Shown: positions 50,234 to 63,711, numbered from the stretch's first letter. The stretch: 64,000 nucleotides of DNA from Lepidodermella squamata (GCA_047495785.1 JBLDXI010000006.1:124001-188000), one strand, 5' to 3'. Numbers and translations: made by a program. The notes: generated by a model not told the origin, from the letters alone.

Positions 50234-53200
50234 ATGAAAAAAATGCTCTTATTACTTATTTTATTCCAGCTTAAAATCGCGTCGTTGGCTTTGTGCCAAG
50301 AATGGCTCCAAGTCCCAGTGGATAAAAATAACACCTTGCTGATGTTCGCAACCGCAACGTGGACAGGTTCTGAGCCTCGAGATGGCAAAATTTGCCAGGC
50401 TGCGATGCAGGTCGCCGTCGATACTGTCAACTCTCGAACGGATATTTTACCGCAATATCGCATTCAGGTCAAATTCTACGACGAAGGCCCCAACGCGATT
50501 TTGGCCACACGCCAATTTGTCCGATTTCTCGATGACGCTGATAGCGAAATAGCTAATGACTCGAAAAATCGCACCTTCATCGCTCCGGCTGTTGTTGGAA
50601 CGGCAATAAATTGCAATAATTTGGCGAATATTGCGAAAAATTTGAAATTCGTCCAATTCACGCCTGGCTGCAGCGGGGTTCAATTCACGAATCGGCGTGA
50701 TTTATACCCGTTTTTGTACCGAAATCGAATCCCGGCAGAGACTCAATACCTGATGCCGATGTTTCTCGTCAAAAATTACCGAGGTGGCTGGAAAGAAATG
50801 GGCAATATCGCATTCGACGGAACTATCGGAACCTCAAATCCTAGTATGGGCTTGGTAAAAAGTGAAAATTCAGCCTTTTCTGATCCGAATAACCTTGACG
50901 AGATTACGTTTCGAAGAATCGCCAATAGCAACGCGAGAATTTTATTCATCGGTACAGGAACCGCGGCGACTTATACCAATTTCATATGCAAGGCATTTAA
51001 TTTCGGAATTAAGCCACCGCTCTTTTTCTTTCTAACTTCATCGTCGAATTTCAACGATCCTTACGCTAAGGATTTGAAACTACCGCCTGGGTGTAGCTAC
51101 GATGCGTTTAAAATGCAGATTCAGGCTACGTTCTGGGGTGGTCCGTTCGATTTCGCCCTAGAAAATAACGGTAATACGACGCTGGGCTATGACATGGTTG
51201 GGTTTGAGCGGTACCTGGATGCGTTGACTAATTCGTCACGCTCGGCTGATTACGTACGGCGGCATCGGTGTTTTGATGCTATGGAGCAGGCTTTACTCAG
51301 TTTGGATAAAGCCGAAAAAGTTCTCAGCGCCAAAAACAGGTGAAACTATTTTTTAATAAAAATAGGAAAATGTTTATCAATTTTCAAATTTAACACAACA
51401 TGTTAAATTATTTTTCAGATTTAAAAATATATTAAAAAAAAACAGTTAGAAATTGAAAAAATTATTTCTAAAATTTTTAATATTTGAAAATTGATTAGAG
51501 GGAGAAACCATTTTATTTGGTTGTACTGTGTTATTAACAATAATAACAATGCCTTTAAGACGCAGTGGTATATATTTCTTAATTTTAGTTGGATAATATT
51601 TTGATTAATGGTTGGATTGATTGTTAGCGTATAGATGATGATTTAGGATTCTAATTCCATCTTTTAGAACTTGAAGGGCGATTTCCACTGATTTGCTGCT
51701 GCTGATGCCGTAATCCTGAAGTAGTTTTACCGCTTCTTTTGTCAGTGAGCCACGGGCGCCAATGTAGAGGCCGCGTACTAAAAATTATTAAAAAATTTAA
51801 ATTTTTTTATAAATTGCCTAAAATTCGAATTTAAATTTAAACTTGAATTAAATTGGTTTAATTTTTGTTGCCTTTATAGGTCGCTTCGCGATTTTAAAGA
51901 CGATCCTTGGGCTGTTGTTAAAGCTGTCAATAAATCGGCGGCCGAGTCGGATTTCATCGGCCTCCGAATCGGTCGAATTTTCTATTCGAAACGCGTCGAA
52001 ATGGACGCCGAGCCGCAGTTTGTCGCGCAGTGGTTCAACGGCCGCATGCGAGTCATTTACCGAATCCGGTACAACGGCTCAGATTATAACAACGACCTTC
52101 ATAACATGTCGTTTTACGCGGTTGAACCAGGCGAAGATCCGGTTTGGATGACTAGGGACGGATCGCCACCGAAAGACTTGAGCAAAGTCGGCATTATCCT
52201 CGACTCGTTCGCTATTCAAGTATTCGGAGTCGTCATTTCAGCCGTTTTCATCTCAACGCTCGGTCTAGCATTTTTAGCCGTAAAATTGATTAGGCGACAT
52301 GCGAAAATCGGAAAAATCAACATGCTAGTGATGACACGAGCTGATTTAATGTCGATGATCGGCTGTGTCCTCTGTAATTTAGCCGCGGTTAGTTTCGCAT
52401 TGACGACATTTGAGGCGACCCCACAGCCAAATTTGTGCCAATTAAAAGCTGCTTTGACAACTCTCGGTGTCGCTTTGACGGTCTCGTCCGCAGTTTCGCG
52501 GCTTTTAAATGCAGTTCGGCGGCAAAGTGCTCGTAAAAAGGTTGATTTTATTTAATTTTAGTTTAATTTTAAATCTGAATTGTTTTCAATTTTTTAAGGC
52601 CCAATTTCAGCGCAAACTAGGTCGATTAACGGCTTTATTCAGCCGGGGTCAAACGCCTGATAATCGATCAATTTCTTCCAAGGCAACGTTGCGTGGCCCT
52701 AATTTAGGCCGCGATCGCCCGTTAGCTACAAATCATCGCCATAACAGGCAATGGGAGAATAAAATCCTGCTGCAAATTTTCATCTTCACCATGGCAAACT
52801 TTACAATCAGTTTGATAGCTGTTTTCCTTGACGAATTGCAGGAATTTACCGTTGTTTCTTCGTCTTATTATGACCCAGTTTCGGACGCTTATTTCTCGCC
52901 TGTTCGGGCGTATTGCCGGTCGGAATATCTACACATCTGGGCGCCTATTCTATCGGCAATTCACCTGTTGCTGCTGATTTTAGCAGCTTTTCTCGCCTAC
53001 GAAATTCGCCGCTCAATCGCGGCGAGTGCTGATTTGAAGTACGAGCTGACAATATCGCGGATAGTTGCCCTGAACACGCTGGCTATTTATGCGGCCGTTT
53101 TTGTCCTCGTCATGATTCTACCAGAGAAACAATCGACGCTGAAATCGTACATTCTAGCTTTTGGGGTGTTGGTTTTAGGAAATTCATGCTGCTGGCTGAC

Positions 53201-53342
53201 GTTATTACCCATGTTTTTCAAAGCTGAAATCAACGAGATTACCGCTTCGATGGAGAGAAACGCCGGTTCGATTTCATTGAGCTCTGATAAAGCGCCAAAA
53301 ACAATAGTGACAATCCTCCCAAGTGTTCCAGACAATAAATAA
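50234..53342 (+). CDS. GABA-B-like class C GPCR; exons 50234-51339, 51880-52540, 52599-53342
   Basis: Identical 'ATWTGSEPRDGKICQAAMQVAV' and 'WGGPFDFA' blocks shared with the 22.5 and 25.9 kb genes. Splicing gives 'NRSLRDFKDDP', matching the paralogues. Confidence 0.9.
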
Positions 53343-53711
53343 TAATTTGTATTTTTTTCAAATTTTTAAGGTGGAGTTTTTCAATAAAATTATGACATTC
53401 CTTGGCTTTTTCAATTGTTGAATTTTGCAGTTCGAATAAATGCGTGACCTAATTATAATAAAATTGCGAGAACAAATCGCGGTCGAAAGATGCGAGGACT
53501 GCACTTTTATTACGATGAGTGTGTGTAATAAAAAATTGCAAACAGCAACGCACATTTGCTTGTCGCGCCTTTTTATTCTGTGTTTCATAATCACGCACAC
53601 ACATTATACACGTCGTCTTGTTACTCGCTGGCATAACTGAATGGGCGTTTCGATTTTCTAGCTTATTTCTTGCTCTACACATTTGTTACTCGTAAAACTA
53701 TTATTTTAGTC

Positions 53712-56377
53712 ATGTTAGCCCAACAGTGGAAAAAGGCCGGGCGGAAGGCCGATATTCTCAACAAGCTTTCTATCAAAGAGCTGAGAGAAGAAGGCTTGAA
53801 AAGCGGGGTTTACTGCAAAAAAACAGCTACCAAAGGTAAGTGATTTTTTGTTAATTTCGTGTTTTTTCATCGTCTTTTTCTTTGAAGGCGAAATCGTCGC
53901 AACCCTTCAAGCTCGTCTCGAGGCGCAACATGGAAAGGAAGCGACGCCCCCGCCTAGTGACTCGGATTCTGACACTGTAAGTTTTACTTATTTTTATTTT
54001 TCAAATAAATAATTTTAATTTTTTTTTTCAAATTTTCAGGAGCCCTGTGTGAAAATGGCGAAATTAGGGATGAAGGAAGAAGACTACGAGGAGAAACTGC
54101 GAAATCGCCTCATCTTTATATTCACGAGCCAAAGCAACGCCAAAGAAGAAAAACCGAAGACCCCAGCCAAATCTGGCCCTGGCAACAAGGCTTCAACTTC
54201 GAAACTTCTCGCCGCAGTTGCTGCTGCTACAGCCCCGACCAAAGCTACCGATTTCTGCTGCACATCCGAGATCGACATCATCCCACAGATCGAGATCAAC
54301 GGCTGGCAGTTGAAGTACCCGTGCGACGACGAGGTTGGCGAGAAATTGGTCACTTTAGCCAGTGCTGCTCCAGTTGGAAAAGGCGCTGATACAGTCATGG
54401 ATAAAACCATTCGAGACGGCTGGCAAATCGAGTCGAGCAAGGTGAAAATCGTGACTACGGCCTGGTCGACGTTGTTCAGCAATTCGAAGAAGAGCAAGTT
54501 GTTGGAAACGGTTCGCCTCAGCCTGGCGCCGCAGTGCGAGAAAATCTCGGCCGAGTTCTACAAGTTGCTGGTCTACGGCAAGGGCTCGTTCTTCAAGTCA
54601 CATCGAGACACGCAGCGGCAGCCGAATCATTTCGGGTCAATTGTTGTCTCGCTGCCGAGTCACCACACCGGGGGAGATTTGACTGTTCAACACGGCGGAT
54701 CGCAGCGCAGTTTCCAGTTCGGCCTCAAGAAGGGATTCGACTCGCTCAAGTAAGCTTCGAAAAGTTTCGAATTTTATTTAAATCCAGATTATCAACTTCA
54801 AACATTAGAAATGTTGGTTTGACTTTGCTAAAATTTATTTTGAATTTCAATAAATTTTGAAAAATCCATCAAGTCGCAATTCCGAATTCAGAACTAAATA
54901 AATTTGTCTTCTCGAAATTTTTCCACTTTCAAAATTAATCGTTTTTTGCGTCTAATTTTTGAGAATTGCTTTGGAAATTTGTCTTGTAATTCGGAAAAAC
55001 TGCCTTTTCACCTTTTTTGGATAAAAATAAATACCTGAATTAAAAAAATTAAATACTAGGCATTGGTTTTTCTCAACGTAATGTTGGAATCCTTTAATCG
55101 CCGATCAACTCGATATTGGATCGCTGTGAAATTTGTTCCCAAGTTATTAGCAGTTTGAACTGTCGCCAGGTGAAAAGGGAAAACCTAGCCCTGAACCTAA
55201 TTTATTTTTAAACTCATCTGTAATCATGTCTTGGCGCCTGGGCATCGATGCAGTTGAGCTCAAAGTTTAGGTTACGCACGAGTTAAATTTAGACGCGACG
55301 AGTGCGTTGAGATAAATTAGCGCTGTAACAGTTTGAAGCCAGTTTGAATGACGTCATCAGCTTCATGATACCTTGCGTGTGTTAATTTTATACATAAATT
55401 TCATGAAATATATTGGAAAAATAATAATGATAAAAAAGTTGCGAAATTGTTCAAATTTTTCGATTTTTTTCACACCTGAGAAACTTGTTTTTTTGTATTA
55501 AAATGAAAGTTTTTACTGAATTCCACGACCTTTTTTGTTGCAAAATTTTCAAAGCTTTGAATCGCGACCCGAAATAACTGAGGAAAAATTGTTTCATTCG
55601 GAAAGACCTTCGGCCTCTACCAACATTTTGTGACTTTATTATTTTGATTATTTGTTAATTTTTTTCAGGTGCCACATGGTTGCGTTTTTTACCGACTGCG
55701 TTCACGAAGTTCTGCCCGTCAAGGACGGCTATCGCGTGACGATGACCTACAACCTGTTCTTCGAAGGCGAGAACGCCCCGGAAGTCCCAATTGCCGCCAC
55801 CGATCTCGGCCAGAAAATCAGCCGCAATCTCAACAAACTGTTCTCGCTATCAATGTGGCAGGACAAAACCCTCGGCTGGCTGCTCGAACACCAATACGCC
55901 CTAACTTCCCTCAACCCATCGATGTTGAAAGGCGCCGATCGAACGCTGTATGATGCCCTGCTTTCAAGTGGAAATTTCGAGGTCGAATTCATCCCGGTTT
56001 TAGTCGAGGCTAATGGCCAGGGCGGCTGGGATAACGGCCGTCAGAAACCGGCGACTTTGTACAGCGAGGCTATTGACAGCAAGTATGACTGCATGCAGAT
56101 GTCAGTCAGCCGCATGTCTTCCGAAGATTTCTCTCGCAAAAAATCGGCGAATGAATCGATGTTCGGTCGCGGTGATGGCAAATCGAAGTTGCTGTGTTCG
56201 TTCGAGTACAGCGGCGGGCCGTCGTATGACGAGGGGCCTGTTGAGTTTATCAACAACTGGAAGGATGTTTCGATCGGTGAAAAAGCTAGTGGCCATGCTA
56301 GTGCGACGGGTAACGAAGGCACCGAGTTCGAACTTCAGTACCAGAAGGCGGCGTTTCTCGTCAAACGTAAAAAGTGA
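53712..56377 (+). CDS. SAP/HeH-like domain + 2OG-Fe(II) oxygenase (prolyl-4-hydroxylase-like superfamily), copy 1; exons 53712-53835, 53888-53976, 54040-54749, 55669-56377
   Basis: HxD (SHRDT), distal His (DCVHEV) and 2OG-binding Arg (GYRVT). N-terminus LNKLSIKELREEGLKSGVYCKKTATKGEIVATLQARLE. Intron phases are consistent. Confidence 0.85.
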
Positions 56378-56539
56378 GGAAGAAGCATAGATGAGAATTG
56401 ACGACTTTTTCTTCGCATTTTGTGACTTTGATACATACCTCTGGAAATTAGTGATACTACCTACTATACGATGGCAATGTAAAATGGCTGGTGATTTTTC
56501 TCGCGTGATTGTTTGGCTCTTGCTTACTCGAATAAATAA

Positions 56540-57690
56540 ATTACCACTGTCGGCCTGCGGCCTTTGACAGTTGACGGGGAACTCCGTGACTTTCTCGAAC
56601 ACGTGGGCACGTGTGAACTTGAACATGCCTAACCTAAGACCTAAGTATAACTTTCTTGCACATCCGTGACTTGCTGCCCAGCTTTGCGTATAACCATGTA
56701 TCGTGTCACCCATGCGCGACGACGGCGACGACGGCGACGACGGGATGGAGATGATCGTTCATTTGAGAGTCATTCCGTAAGCGCCACCTGCACATATTGG
56801 CATCAGGGTCCATATCACGCAGGCCGAGCTGATGGACTTGCAAGTTAATGCATCGTTGCTCAGGTGGGCTTCAATTCAAGCTACAAATCACGAATTTGAA
56901 TATCTACGTGGTAGTAAGATTTGCTTGTTATTCGGTAAAAATAGCGCACATGCATAGCGCATAGCGTAAATGTTTTCACGAAAACGTGAGCGGGTCTGGG
57001 AATGTGCTATTGCCGTTAGTCTCAGGTCAAAAGTTGCCAGTCGTACATGCTAAAATAGTACGAATTGCATACGTCCGGGAACTTTTCATTGGAAGATTGA
57101 AAACAGGTGATAGACGATTTATGACGCCATGTCACGAGAGTCAGCATGTCATCGGATGCTGCGCGCTGATGTCATGCGCACAACGCGGTTATCGACAGCG
57201 GCACAGCGCACGCGGCATCGGTTGGCGACTGCACAGGGCTGTAGTATGTTACCGTGTAGATTCGTCGTCTGATGTTGGTGCTATACGAATAGCACGTTAC
57301 ATGGAGAGCGTGAAGATGGCGTGAAGATGTTCGCACGTCGCCGTGTGGCAATCTTGAACACGCCTTTTACATCCTTCTTCAGTAATAGCAATAAGCAATA
57401 GTCGATGGTTGTGAGACAGTTGGACAGTCTGTTTTTTTTACGTACACCACTATCCTCCTTCACGATACACCTAACAGCGGAATACAGCCTGCATGGGGTA
57501 ACTGTGACTACACCGCTATTTTTTATAGGTTCCCCACTATCCTCCTTGACGACCGACAGACCGACGAACGACGAACGACGAACGAACGACGAACGACGAA
57601 CGAACGACGAACGACGAACGAACGAACGACGAACGACGAACGAACGAACGAAGGCGACCCGTGACAACGGGGAGTTCCCCGTCATTGATT
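56540..57690 (-). mobile_element. DINE-1/Helentron-like non-autonomous element (HINE)
   Basis: Subterminal inverted repeats tgacggggaactcc (56572) / ggagttccccgtca (57671-57684), a hairpin ctgtcggcctgcggcctttgacag next to one end, and a microsatellite next to the other. Confidence 0.65.
57550..57652. repeat. (ACGA/GACGAAC)n microsatellite
   Basis: Directly visible tandem array. Confidence 0.9.
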
Positions 57691-58209
57691 TATCGGAGTT
57701 TTTCGCAAGTTTTTGTTTAACAGGATGCTAAAGGCAAAAAATATTCAAATAGTTTTCAATTATAATGTCAAATAAATGTTTTAATATTGCTGAAAATCGG
57801 GTGAAATTAGAAAAATTTATGAAATTTCAGAAAAATCATGAATCACCTTCATTAAATTTAACAGTTTTTTTTTATAAAATTGAAATTGAAAATGTACATC
57901 TTAGAAATTAATTTTCAATAAGTACCTAGAGATGTGCGTGAATTCCTTATCAATAATTCCAGATCAGGTGGATAAATAATTGTTGGAAAAGATGGAACCT
58001 GCGGCAATTTTCTTAAATCGTGGTTTCAGGTCACATGTTTGATAATAGGCCAGTCTACCACAGGCGAAAATTACTCAATCTGTGACAACAGGCGGTGACG
58101 ATCTGCTTGAGTTTCTCTTGGAGTGAAAATTATAGTTTCGCCTTAATCATTTCATCGCTTTGACCTGTCTCGTTGCCATTATTAGCCTGATTTTCTGGCC
58201 ATTTTAGCA

Positions 58210-60422
58210 ATGCTCGCGCTGCAGTGGAAAAAGGCTGGACGGAGCGCCGATCTTCTCAACCAGCTCTCAATCAAAGAATTGAAGGAGGAGGCTGGCAGAA
58301 ATCATCTGTACATCAAATCATCAGCCACCAAAGGTAATTGAGAAGCGCTTTTTTGAATACCTGGACAATTATTAATTCTCATAAATATTGTCATTACAGG
58401 AGACATAGTGGCGGCAATACAAGCCAGATTCGAGTCTAAGCATGGTGAAAGCGCCACACCTCCACCAAGCGATTCAGAGTCAGATAACGTGAGTGCCTAT
58501 TCAGCTTTCCTAGCATGCTGAGAAATAAGAAATCATGCTCGGAAGAATTAGATATGAAATAAATATCAAGTTACCATTCCACAGAAAAGTGAAGCTTGAT
58601 AATTTGTTTCATGTTTTTACTAATTTACTTTTAATTATGAAACTTAACACATTCTCTTCTTTATTAACATCAACATTTTTCAAATTTTTATGGCCAAATT
58701 TTAATTACTCTGCATCATTTTTTTTCATTTTCTAATTCAAAGTTAAGAGTTGAAGCCTAAAATTTTGAGGAAATTCGAAATATTTAAATTTGCAAAAATT
58801 TCATTCATTCAAAGTTTGAAATTTCGCAATTTTCTTTCATTTTTTCAATTAATAAATTAATAAATTAATAATTGCCGAATTTGTAACTCGCTTGCTTAAA
58901 TCTCTCCAGGAACCTGCATCCAAGGTCATCAAGAGCGAATTGTCCGAAGACGAGGCTGAAGAACTCGAGCAGAAACTCCGCAAACGCCTGGCCTGGATCT
59001 TCGCGAACAACACCTCGGCGAAATCAGCAGAGGCACCCAAGACACCTGCTGGTAAACAAGGCGCTGCCGGAAGAGCATTCGCCAAGACACCAAACTCAGC
59101 TGCCAAATTAGCTGTAGTAGCAGCAGCTCCAACCAAAGCCACCGATTTCTGCTGCACATCCGAGATCGACATCCTCCCTCAGATCGAGATCAACGGCTGG
59201 CAGTTGAAGTACCCTTGCGATGACGAGGTTGGCGAGAAACTGGTCACTCTAGCCAGTGCTGCTCCAGTCGGAAAAGGCGCTGATACCGTTATGGACAAAA
59301 CGATTCGCGATGGCTGGCAAATCGAGTCGAGCAAGGTGAAGATCGTCACAACCGCCTGGTCGACGCTGTTCAGCAATTCGAAGAAGAGCAAGTTGTTGGA
59401 GACGGTTCGCCTCAGCCTGGCGCCGCAGTGCGAGAAAATCTCGGCCGAGTTCTACAAGCTGCTGGTCTACGGCAAGGGCTCGTTCTTCAAGTCGCATCGA
59501 GACACGCAGCGGCAGCCGAATCATTTCGGGTCGATCGTTATTTCGCTGCCGAGCCACCACACCGGGGGAGATTTGACTGTACAGCATGGCGGGTCACAGC
59601 GCAGTTTCCAGTATGGCCTCAAGAAAGGATTCGACTCGCTCAAGTAACTTATTGACAATTTGAACTAGTTCGAAATTTTTGTTTGAATTATTTAGGTGTC
59701 ACATGGTTGCCTTTTTCACAGACTGCATTCACGAGGTCCTCCCAATTAAGGAGGGATATCGAGTCTCATTGACCTACAACCTGTTCTTCGAGGGCGAAAA
59801 CGCCCCTGAAGTTCCGCTGGCTGCTAGCGACCTCGGCCAGAAAATTCGCCGGAATCTTGACAAACTCTTCGCGCTTGAAAGTTGGAAGGATAAATCTCTT
59901 GGTTGGCTCCTGGAACATCAATACGCCCTATCGTCACTCAACCCTTCGATGTTGAAAGGCGCAGATCGAACTCTGTACGACGCATTGGTTTCAAGCGGAG
60001 CTTACGAGGTTGAATTCATCCCGGTCTTGGTCGAGGCTTGCGGTCAATCTGGCGATGACGACAGCCGTCAAAAAGCTGCCAAGCTCTACAGCGAAGCTAT
60101 CAACGACCCGGAATATGAAGGTCTTCATTTCACCATCTCGCGCATGACGGCTGAAGATTTCAGCAGCAAGAAGAAAACGCCGAGCCTTGGCTACGGAATG
60201 CACTGCTATCGTGATGACGAGAAAAAGGCGAAGGTGTTGTGTGAGTTTGAATACACGGATTTTGGTTCTTTTGGAAATGATGGGTCTGCTGATTTCATCA
60301 ATGATTGGCGCGAGGTTTCGATCGGTGAAAAAGCTAGTGGCCATGCGGATGCGACTGGCAACGAAGGCACTGAGTTCGACCTCCAGTATCAGAAAGCTGC
60401 GTTCTTGATCAAGCCTAAGTAG
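58210..60422 (+). CDS. SAP/HeH-like domain + 2OG-Fe(II) oxygenase, copy 2; exons 58210-58333, 58400-58488, 58910-59643, 59696-60422
   Basis: Same exon structure and catalytic residues as copy 1. N-terminus LNQLSIKELKEEAGRNHLYIKSSATKGDIVAAIQARFE. Confidence 0.85.
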
Positions 60423-60607
60423 TAGCAAATTAAACAGATGATAGGATTTTCTCGAATTTTCCGACATGAAAAAGGTCTTTCGCTTTGTAATTTTCTTTGA
60501 ATAAAAGTTTGAATAAACAAGCACACCCTGAAAAGAATAGCAAGGAAGATGTGAAATATTATGTTCTGAAATCGATTGTTAATAAAATTATGAAGTCTTT
60601 TCTGCGG

Positions 60608-63600
60608 TTATTCACAATCCACTTTTGTTTTTCGGATCATCATAGCTGCTTGTTCTAGCAGCTTGCCTCCCCATTTGAAACTGCTGGTTTTATCGTTCAG
60701 GTTTGCATGGTCACCACAGTCTAAAGAAGGTGTAAATATTTGTGAAAGCAATATTTCAATATTAGAAAGAGTACCTTCGGTGAACCACCAGCCTGCCTGA
60801 TGATTCTCCGCGCACGTAGGATCATTGCGTCGGTAGTGACGATTGTAGACTGGAGTATAGTTTTCGTGTGTTCTGAATGGCTGATCCCTATGAGGCTGCA
60901 ATACATCACTATCGGGGAATTCGCCCTCGCCAATGTCGCAAGTAGATTCCCCATAGCTCATCTTGAAGCTTTCGCTCTCGCTTTTTAGGTAGAACTTCTC
61001 GTAGAATTTATACCTTATGGCCTTGTCTTCCCGAGATTCCAAGAGAATTAGTAACGAATATTTCGCCGTAGTGTCTTTTTTGTAGGTAAGTGAGTGGACG
61101 TGTTGGTTACCAAGCCAAAAGTTTGAACCAGCTACATCACCGAATCCGTTTTTGAAGTCAGCGCTAGATTTGTAGAAAGGATTTTCTTCATCAGTAGATC
61201 GGCGATGGAAAACAGTCCAGCCTCCACCTTGAGTTGTCATGTCGCAAAACACTTTCAAAGGGTAGCCTTGATCGTGATTTACATAAATCGTGTATACCCC
61301 ATCCTGCTCTCCTAATCCGAAATGCAAAATATCTTCGCAATCTGACGGCAATGTCCTCTCGCAATAGCCCCCGACATACCAGTAGCCCACTGATTTGCAA
61401 CTTACAACTTCGGAGCCGGCTACGTGGTAACCCATTTTACACTGTATTTCGCCGACTGAACCGACACAGGTCGAATTAACTGTAATCTTTCCGTTGATTA
61501 TTTTCGGAGGATTACCGCAAACACGCGGGACTTTGTGACTGATCTGCGAAACCTTGTTATCGCACGAGTCGAGCGCGTTCATCGAACATTTTCCCGAGTT
61601 CATCATCACCTGCAGCAGCAGCGGATAACCGAGGTGCTGCGCCAGGTGAAGCGCACTCAACCCGTCACGGTTCAACATTCCACATTTCGCATTAGCATTA
61701 TGCAGGAAATACGACACCAAATCACGACAGTTCCTAGCTACGGCGGCATGAAGCGGAGTTTGCCCGAAATCATCCCAAATTTCCATAACATCACTCGTTT
61801 GATTAGCTAATAAGGCGTGAACTATTTCGAGGGTTAACGTGTTGCAAGGGGTCGCGAGGTGCACGGGGGTTCGGCCAAAATTATCCTGCGATGTTATTTC
61901 GCCAGATGAATACCGAATCAACAGCTGAATCATCTCGAGATGCTGATTCGCAACTGCATCGTGAAGAGGCGTTTGACCGTAAGAATTCACAGCAGAAGTG
62001 TTGGCCAAGCTATTTTCCAACAACATCTCAGTTAGTTCCAAAATGTTATTCCTGGCACAGAGATGAAGGGGAGAATCCCGACCAGTTTTGACCTGGGCGA
62101 TGCCTTGAACCCCAGAGTTGATCAAAAGCTTAGCTATTTCAATCTTCCCTTGATCGATTGCCGCGACTAGAGCCGTCCTGTTGAATGGATCGAGCTCGGC
62201 AAAGTTGAATTGATGCAGCAGGAACATGTCGATGGCTTCAATGTTATCCGCCTCAATCGCCAATTGAATCGCATTTTGCCCAAGCTCGTTCTTTGCCGCT
62301 TTGTCAGCTCCATGGCTGATCAAATAGGTAATCAGTTCAATAGGCTTCTTCTCATAAGTCGCGACTAGGAGGGACGAAGCGCTGCCCAACTGGTTTTTCG
62401 CAGGGAAAGTAGGCCGATTAATATCGACGAACAAATTAGGCAGGCGTAGTAGGTAATCGACATAAGCCGGGTGATTGGCGAGATGAAGAGCCGAGAAGCC
62501 ACGTCGATCAACCGCGGAAGGATTCGCGCCAAATCGAAGCCGCAGCCGTTCAGCAAAATCGCGAGATGAAACCATGGAGGCGATTAGGAACGGGGTCCGG
62601 CCGAGAAAATCGCCAGTTTCGATGATGCGTTTGCTCCGTCGCCACAACATTTCGATGATTGAATCGTCTGTTTCGATAGAAGATTTATTCGAACTACTTG
62701 CTAGAACGTGTACAGCTGTTCCACCGGTTGAGTCTTGAGACAAAACATTTACCTTGGGCTGTTGCAAGAGAAGCTCAATGTACCTATGCTCAATAATTGT
62801 GAGAAGCATTACAAATGGGCTTGGAAATTGTCTTACTTTTTCTGGCGGTGAAAAGCAGCGGCATGGAAGGGACTTCCATTAGTCTTCTGTTTGCCGTAGA
62901 CACAATTTCCAATGGTCAAAGTTTCCGGAGATAATTTCTCAAGCATTTTGGTGGCGAATTCAACTGACCCACTGGCCGCTGCGATACAAGCTGGGACTTG
63001 CCCCAAGTTATCAATAGAAGTCGCATTGAACAGGTCACTGCTTGCAAAATCAGCAATATTCTGTTGAGCAGCCAAATGGGAAATCGTTAGGCCTGATCTT
63101 GTTTTCGCAGAAGCTAGCTCTTTGTCTGCATTGATCAAAGCTTTCAAGCAATCGAAATTCTTCCTTAAAACAGCTCGATGGACGATTTGGAGACCGTCTC
63201 GATCTTCATGGGTAAGATTCGCGCCATGCTTCACCAAAGTCGCAATGACATCCGCCGATTTTCCCGAATTGCAAGCGTGGAAAATTGGCGTTTCCCCAGC
63301 TGCATTCTCAGCCTCCGTTAATTCAGCAACAGGTTTCTTCAATTGAGGAGCAATTTTGAGGAGATGGTCGACCATTTCAGCCTGGCCGTTGGAGATAGCT
63401 AGATGAAGCGGCTGTTCCTCTGAACTTGCGGTCTTTGCGCTGAAATCGGCGCCCTTCAGGCTCAGGAGTTCAACTACCTTAGCCGAGCCGTAGAAGGCAG
63501 CTAGATGTAGTGGCGTAAAGCCTGTTGAATTTGCGAAATTGACCCGACCGGAAAACTGCTCATCCAGCAGCTCCTCAGTCTCAGCTGCATCATCGGCTTT

Positions 63601-63711
63601 GATTGCATTGAAGAGTTTTTTGAAGGCCTCAGCGGAAGGCTGCTTGCTATCTGCAGCAACCGATATGAATAGAGTTGCGGTAAACAAAAAGCCAAGTTTC
63701 AACATTATCAT
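60608..63711 (-). CDS. Signal peptide + long ankyrin array + Sushi + fibrinogen C-terminal (FReD) domain; introns 62836-62784 and probably 60774-60721
   Basis: Signal peptide MIMLKLGFLFTATLFISVAA, many TPLHLAA-type repeats and a CCP 'CGNPPKIINGKI...C'. FReD motifs 'VFCDMTTQGGGWTVFHRR', 'GFGD...FWLGN' and 'GWWF..C..ANLN'. A phase-2 intron joins the two ORFs. Confidence 0.9.

Follow-up and report, generated by a model that had tools for sequence, protein, structure and literature searches.

Tandem prolyl-hydroxylase-like oxygenases with a SAP-like head in Lepidodermella squamata: candidates for DNA- or chromatin-directed hydroxylation

What does an iron-dependent oxygenase do when its N-terminus resembles a module that binds DNA? 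The question is raised by two genes in a 64,000-nucleotide stretch of Lepidodermella squamata DNA (GCA_047495785.1, JBLDXI010000006.1:124001-188000), hereafter the window, in which positions are counted from the first letter. Oxygen sensing, the control of translation and epigenetic marks all depend on the hydroxylation of proteins and nucleic acids by 2-oxoglutarate (2OG) oxygenases. With moderate confidence, we favour the reading that the two tandem genes encode Fe(II)/2OG oxygenases of an uncharacterised family, in which a SAP-like head would tether the enzyme to DNA or chromatin and a nearby substrate would be hydroxylated.

The genes are paralogous and lie head to tail on the + strand, gene 1 at 53712-56377 (543 aa) and gene 2 at 58210-60422 (557 aa). 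This is where a preliminary description of the sequence had placed a tandem pair, and both copies are present and intact with canonical splice sites. Each gene has four exons, entered in phases 0, 1, 0 and 2 in gene 1 and gene 2 alike, and all six introns run GT..AG (boundaries were read from the sequence and checked by script), with lengths of 52, 63 and 919 nt in gene 1 and 66, 421 and 52 nt in gene 2. In both genes the ATG is preceded, at a distance of 2 nt, by a conserved ATTTTAG that resembles a splice acceptor (within 53702-53711 and 58200-58209). Further copies of the oxygenase genes were not found within the window. The features are as follows.

Gene 1 exon 1: 53712..53835, + strand; 41 codons plus 1 nt, with the ATG, a conserved W..GR and, from about 53757, SAP-like helix 1 and the loop.
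Gene 1 exon 2: 53888..53976, + strand; 89 nt entered in phase 1, with SAP-like helix 2 (to about 53925), then Pro and the acidic Ser/Asp linker.
Gene 1 exon 3: 54040..54749, + strand; linker, N-terminal helix and first half of the double-stranded beta-helix.
Gene 1 iron ligands in exon 3: His 54601-54603 and Asp 54607-54609, + strand.
Gene 1 exon 4: 55669..56377, + strand; distal His 55703-55705, 2OG-binding Arg 55733-55735, C-terminal module 55769-56374 and stop.
Gene 1 AATAAA-type poly(A) signals: 56531..56540, + strand; about 155 nt past the stop.
Gene 2 exon 1: 58210..58333, + strand; paralogous to gene 1 exon 1, with 66% amino-acid identity.
Gene 2 exon 2: 58400..58488, + strand; SAP-like helix 2 and acidic linker.
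Gene 2 exon 3: 58910..59643, + strand; linker and first half of the oxygenase, including HxD.
Gene 2 exon 4: 59696..60422, + strand; distal His, Arg, C-terminal module and stop.
Gene 2 AATAAA signals: near 60501 and 60514, + strand; 3' of the stop.

Does the short N-terminal peptide belong to these proteins? When gene 1 and gene 2 are compared, exon 1 holds 11 codons with synonymous differences only and 14 with amino-acid-changing differences (synonymous proportion pS 0.65, non-synonymous proportion pN 0.22, dN/dS 0.17), and in exon 2 the synonymous sites are saturated with a pN of 0.19. Because synonymous sites are saturated and amino-acid change is low, the small 5' exons are coding rather than chance open reading frames (ORFs), and the peptide they encode is under purifying selection. 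The preliminary description had quoted this peptide from two small 5' exons and an acidic, Ser-rich linker behind it; the dN/dS of about 0.17 backs the coding status of the former, and the latter is present in both genes. Of all sequences in the databases searched, P0002 on the metagenome contig L001 is the nearest, with about 50% of its residues matching the window proteins. On this contig the upstream exon ends in '...TK' followed by G|GTAAG, which is the identical phase-1 intron position, and the second-helix peptide lies in one ORF with the oxygenase. Since L001 shares both the head exon and its intron, the N-terminal peptide is part of the oxygenase protein in at least two lineages. Besides L001, no near-orthologue with an unsplit N-terminus was found.

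The head follows the pattern L..LSIKEL[RK]EE...G/H, with a loop closing in ATK and then G/D-[ED]-IV-A..-[LI]QAR-[LF]. This motif of about 35 residues is interrupted by the phase-1 intron 1 and is followed by a Pro-rich segment and then the acidic Ser/Asp linker. Rho_N and SAP are small helix-extended-helix modules, and the language-model neighbours of exon 1 alone include clusters of both kinds (0.77-0.86, scores rated as leads only). A profile of exon 1 made from three peptides (gene 1, gene 2 and L001) was compared using hhalign with a profile of the Pfam-positive SAP domains of the family, and aligned in the correct register (E 0.027 and 0.0017) over helix 1 up to the 'RG[LI]' position, while helix 2 was read from the sequence pattern only. 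We consider it fairly probable that the head of both genes is a SAP-like module, and it is plausible that it arose by exon addition.

The strongest argument that the clade may work on DNA or chromatin is the recurrent fusion of its oxygenase to SAP, which is independent of the weak SAP scores of the window itself. An exhaustive profile search with exon 4 returned 1712 proteins at E <= 1e-3, only two of them below 1e-30; a word search with this exon, restricted by its length window, gave a single hit. A Pfam-significant SAP is found in seven of the 152 top relatives as well as in P0251, and it is the only recurrent accessory Pfam domain among the 152. It is N-terminal in P0015/P0152, P0018, P0091 and P0251, and inserted in the C-terminal module in P0005, P0011 (Acrasis) and P0016; these are two different positions, and therefore SAP joined the family at two insertion points. 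P0091 repeats the layout of the window proteins, with a SAP domain (E 2.4e-8), an Ala/Pro stretch, an acidic Ser/Asp linker and the oxygenase. A BRCT domain occurs in P0008, Macro in one member and SWIM in another, Cys-rich zinc-finger-like heads are present in P0013, P0018 and P0076, and many members end in KKQK-type basic tails. The link to DNA or chromatin suggested in the preliminary description is thus backed independently by the Pfam-significant SAP domains of relatives and by the BRCT domain of P0008.

Two observations on these relatives are worth recording in their own right. In P0005, P0011 (from Acrasis kona) and P0016 the full SAP domain lies between the helix after LKGxD and the next long strand, an unusual internal position. 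At L002:5351-7291, beside the SAP-oxygenase P0018, is a 1706-aa protein with T4 RNA ligase, 3'-5' exonuclease, R3H and kinase-like AAA_33 domains; the contig is protist-like.

Named bacterial members of the family come from Bacteroidota, Nocardia, Planctomycetaceae and Rickettsia endosymbionts, and the named eukaryotes comprise many fungi, a green alga, Acrasis (Heterolobosea), Ploeotia (a euglenid) and Soliformovum (Amoebozoa), with the sponge Ephydatia, the whitefly Bemisia and the coral Oculina as the named animals. This bears out the earlier statement that bacteria, fungi and protists supply most of the oxygenase subtype; animals are few among its members. Oculina patagonica carries at least four paralogs (P0146, P0249, P0250 and P0261) on one 33-Mb chromosome, all without SAP. 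Searched with the window exons, P0003 and P0177, NCBIfam offered no curated family, and its only hits to other relatives were far below threshold, to NF003974. A literature search on SAP combined with 2OG or prolyl hydroxylase found nothing relevant. The oxygenase family is uncharacterised and has no studied member.

Which kind of oxygenase follows the head? The H-R-D in exon 3 and the distal His and Arg in exon 4 are intact in both genes, in agreement with the earlier reading of an intact HxD...H...R oxygenase. Across 215-246 relatives the iron-triad columns are 98-100% conserved and the Arg column is 97% Arg; this 2OG-binding Arg stands about 10 residues past the distal His and is present in both genes. 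When 246 family members were aligned to a family hidden Markov model (HMM), 40 positions reached a conservation of at least 80%; both genes retain every one of them, three with a conservative substitution. Among these positions are the iron triad, the 2OG-binding Arg, an N-terminal A..G....T..D...R and a C-terminal His, Tyr, Lys, Asp, Gly-Asn and Tyr. All the motifs previously listed for the subtype (AP.GKG..TV.D..RD.W, YKLLVY..GSFF..H.DT, L.H.Y...LKG.D and GNE) are present, but the gap from the Tyr to LKG is 9 residues and not 4. The Pfam family PF13640 scores 19.3 bits on exon 3 alone, against a cutoff of 27 and 30-44 bits in relatives, and it stays below threshold because intron 3 splits the domain.

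A structure was modelled for the full-length relative P0003 as a proxy, with the window exons as separate rows of the alignment (predicted local distance difference test, pLDDT, 83; predicted template modelling score, pTM, 0.77). Residues 37-248 of this model matched the Pseudomonas putida prolyl hydroxylase (PPHD, a prolyl 4-hydroxylase, P4H; 4iw3) at Z 14.0, the Trichoplax prolyl hydroxylase domain enzyme (PHD; 6f0w) at Z 13.2, PiuC at Z 12.8, Dictyostelium PhyA at Z 11.7, OGFOD1 at Z 11.4 and Tpa1 at Z 11.0, followed by AlkB at Z 9.5 and ALKBH7 at 9.4 (AlkB/ALKBH range 9.2-9.5). There were no TET/JBP entries in the top 50 matches of either structure search with the P0003 model, and a sequence search of the PDB with exons 3 and 4 gave nothing useful. 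The model therefore places the catalytic domain closest to the prolyl-hydroxylase (PHD/P4H, PF13640) clade of 2OG-Fe(II) oxygenases, and not to AlkB. The known substrates of this clade are mostly proteins.

Behind the catalytic domain lies an alpha/beta module of about 200 aa, which is specific to the family and has an invariant His, Tyr, Lys, Asp, Asn and Tyr. The 202 residues of gene 1 itself (55769-56374) were modelled together with 79 aligned relatives (pLDDT 78.7, pTM 0.74), and the comparison of this model with solved structures found no counterpart (best VIA Z 3.3, best Foldseek E 0.37). Its matches in the ESM Atlas were confined to clusters that are unnamed or named as 2OG dioxygenases. 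They come from bacteria, ascomycetes, haptophytes and actinomycetes, and are probably members of this same oxygenase family.

Taken together, the protein appears to be built of a SAP-like head, a Pro-rich and acidic linker, a beta-helix of PHD/P4H type and the 200-residue C-terminal module. In the mechanism that we propose, the head would hold the enzyme on DNA or chromatin and the oxygenase so tethered would hydroxylate a substrate within reach; the ranking of the folds favours a chromatin-associated protein over a base as this substrate, and the C-terminal module probably helps to select it.

Several points weigh against this reading. Pfam run on single exons gave no SAP match at E <= 1 (the motif straddles the junction of exons 1 and 2; the threshold of PF02037, SAP, is 23.9 bits), exon 2 alone, which is too short to score, had no similarity to the SAP profile, and a small custom SAP HMM run on the exon pieces gave marginal or mis-registered matches only. 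Compared with canonical SAP, the motif has about two extra residues in its loop, and the proteins lack a strong nuclear localisation signal (the last residues are KRKK in gene 1 and KPK in gene 2). A DNA-linked module is absent from most of the family, including its coral and sponge members, and the bacterial gene neighbourhoods of three members were mutually unrelated and gave no functional hint. The fold was inferred from the proxy P0003, which is about 35-40% identical to the window proteins, and not from a window protein itself. As for transcripts, run X2 was classed as RNA by a tool guess only and is hence called RNA-like; no read joint across exons 1, 2 and 3 was seen among the joints listed, and the sole X2 joint at 54040 leads to 53727, inside exon 1, on the opposite strand. 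That joint is probably an artefact of cDNA synthesis, library or assembly.

The contigs of the RNA-like run lie on exons 3 and 4 and the 3' untranslated region of gene 1, with none on the 919-nt intron 3. The start of one of them coincides with the first base of exon 3 (54040), and another spans 56409-56568, over the poly(A) signals. These reads give partial support to the expression of gene 1. Several further opposite-strand joints occur in run X2.

Some of the same points favour the alternative that fares best, namely that the enzyme is as described and its head is a protein-interaction or regulatory peptide instead of a DNA-binding SAP, the substrate being a soluble protein or a small molecule. 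The window exons have no significant SAP score, the domain-poor fungal, bacterial, coral and sponge relatives presumably act in this way, and the structural neighbours of the P0003 model include the small-molecule enzymes PolD, PasI and SnoK (Z about 10). Yet helix 1 falls into the correct register against Pfam-positive SAP domains from close relatives, and P0091 combines the layout of the window proteins with a true SAP. SAP has moreover entered the family in two positions as its sole recurrent accessory domain, and BRCT is found in one relative. We regard this alternative as possible but rather unlikely, and retain the SAP-tethered oxygenase as the preferred reading.

Under a second alternative, the head places the catalytic domain on DNA and a base is oxidised, as by TET, JBP or AlkB. 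The fusions to SAP and BRCT would fit such DNA-directed work, the C-terminal module with its invariant polar residues could bind a nucleotide, and P0011 shows a weak, sub-threshold similarity to PF09859 (Oxygenase-NA). However, the catalytic domain ranks with the protein prolyl hydroxylases, above the AlkB/ALKBH enzymes and with TET/JBP missing from the 50 best matches, and neither a nucleotide-recognition lid nor a Cys-rich TET insert was seen. The functional analogy with TET, JBP and AlkB that the preliminary description had drawn is weakened by this fold, and we hold base oxidation to be improbable; a tethered hydroxylase acting on a chromatin-associated protein remains the reading that we prefer.

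Where did the genes come from? Separate trees of the exon 3 and exon 4 regions were built with FastTree, and both pair the two window genes (support 1.0 and 0.995). The pair belongs to a group of 14 to 21 sequences (support 0.95 with exon 3, weaker with exon 4) in which every labelled sequence is eukaryotic; Acrasis, an EukProt entry, the members with SAP and BRCT domains, P0002 and P0003 are in it. The labels within the enclosing clade of 62 to 77 leaves (0.996 with exon 3) are those of fungi, sponge and alga, and all labelled bacteria lie outside it. Among the animals, the sponge copies fall apart from the window genes, and that of the coral is no more than a near outgroup. The preliminary description had thought a horizontal acquisition possible, and a recent transfer from a bacterium, or a contaminant, might seem to suit the patchy distribution with its many bacterial members and the lower score of the animal Oculina (52 bits) than of the protist Acrasis (82 bits) in the exon 4 profile search, but we reject it as highly improbable because each gene has three spliceosomal introns, one of them shared with L001, the GC content of the pair is like that of the remainder of the window, run contigs extend past the low end of the stretch at an even depth of about 46-53, and in both trees the genes sit with sequences labelled as eukaryotic. 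They are eukaryotic genes of long residence, and their position in the trees may reflect either ancient paralogy with losses or transfer between eukaryotes.

The two copies have diverged unevenly. The last ~490 nt of exon 3 of gene 2 (about 59150-59643, its 3' two-thirds) are about 93% identical to about 54256-54749 of gene 1, compared with about 70% elsewhere; dS in this tract is 0.35, with three amino-acid changes in 166 codons, and about 1.4 elsewhere in the genes. The tract covers the N-terminal half of the catalytic domain and is likely the result of gene conversion. Both genes are probably functional.

The surroundings of the pair have features of their own. The spacer between the genes (56540-57650) is a high-copy repeat, with a DNA-run depth of about 300 to 2900 compared with about 48 on the genes; it contains a GAACGAC-type microsatellite at 57548-57647, and many contigs break at 56538-56585. 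The neighbours are a large ankyrin-Sushi-fibrinogen gene on the - strand (60608-63711) and a pair of ORFs resembling a multi-pass membrane protein (52001-53342), neither of which appears related to the oxygenases.

The interest of the locus reaches beyond the two genes. Here is a whole subfamily without a studied member, which combines a prolyl-hydroxylase-like core with a second domain that has no solved relative. That eukaryotes attached modules targeting DNA or chromatin to it independently several times is a strong hint of a nuclear substrate, and makes what would be a 'hypothetical protein' a candidate for a new enzyme of chromatin or DNA modification that can be tested directly. A bolder idea, which we rate as unlikely on present evidence, is that a eukaryote-wide oxygenase family has been recruited to DNA or chromatin by repeated gains of SAP, BRCT or zinc-finger modules and writes a new hydroxyl mark on a chromatin protein or a base, with the C-terminal module as the reader of the substrate. 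The two intact, diverged copies, with a conversion tract over the catalytic half, are natural material for functional tests.

How, finally, do these enzymes compare with known systems? TET, JBP and AlkB share superfamily and cofactors with the window oxygenases, and a DNA-directed role is conceivable on that ground, but their substrate-recognition inserts are absent from the window family, which belongs to a different clade by the ranking of the folds. Membership of TET/JBP was rejected given that no such entry was among the best 50 structure matches, and membership of AlkB given that AlkB and ALKBH7 scored well under the prolyl hydroxylases. OGFOD1, Tpa1 and Ofd1, which are ribosomal-protein prolyl hydroxylases, resemble the window proteins in their two-domain layout with an N-terminal, PHD-like catalytic domain. 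Their C-terminal domain, however, is a second beta-helix, unlike the C-terminal module described here; that of Ofd1 matched the catalytic domain of the P0003 model and not the module, and membership of this group was rejected since the module, folded alone, had no match above Z 3.3. SAP domains (PF02037; SAF-A, Ku70 and PIAS are examples) have two amphipathic helices around a loop that bears Gly, with L..L.h..L[RK] and K..hh..[RL] conserved. The window head resembles them in its apparent hydrophobic and Lys/Arg pattern, of the type L..L.h..L[RK] ... G ... K..hh..L, in its N-terminal position and in the flexible linker that follows; it differs in that no score above threshold was obtained from its exons, in its longer loop and in its division by an intron, and its binding to DNA is putative. 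The nearest likeness is to the PHD/P4H enzymes (4iw3, the Trichoplax PHD, human PHD2 and PhyA), with which the window oxygenases share the double-stranded beta-helix, the HxD...H triad and the Arg about 10 residues past the distal His. Identity to these enzymes is 13-18%, and the window family adds to their common core the N-terminal A..G....T..D...R motif, the 200-aa C-terminal module and the SAP-like head.

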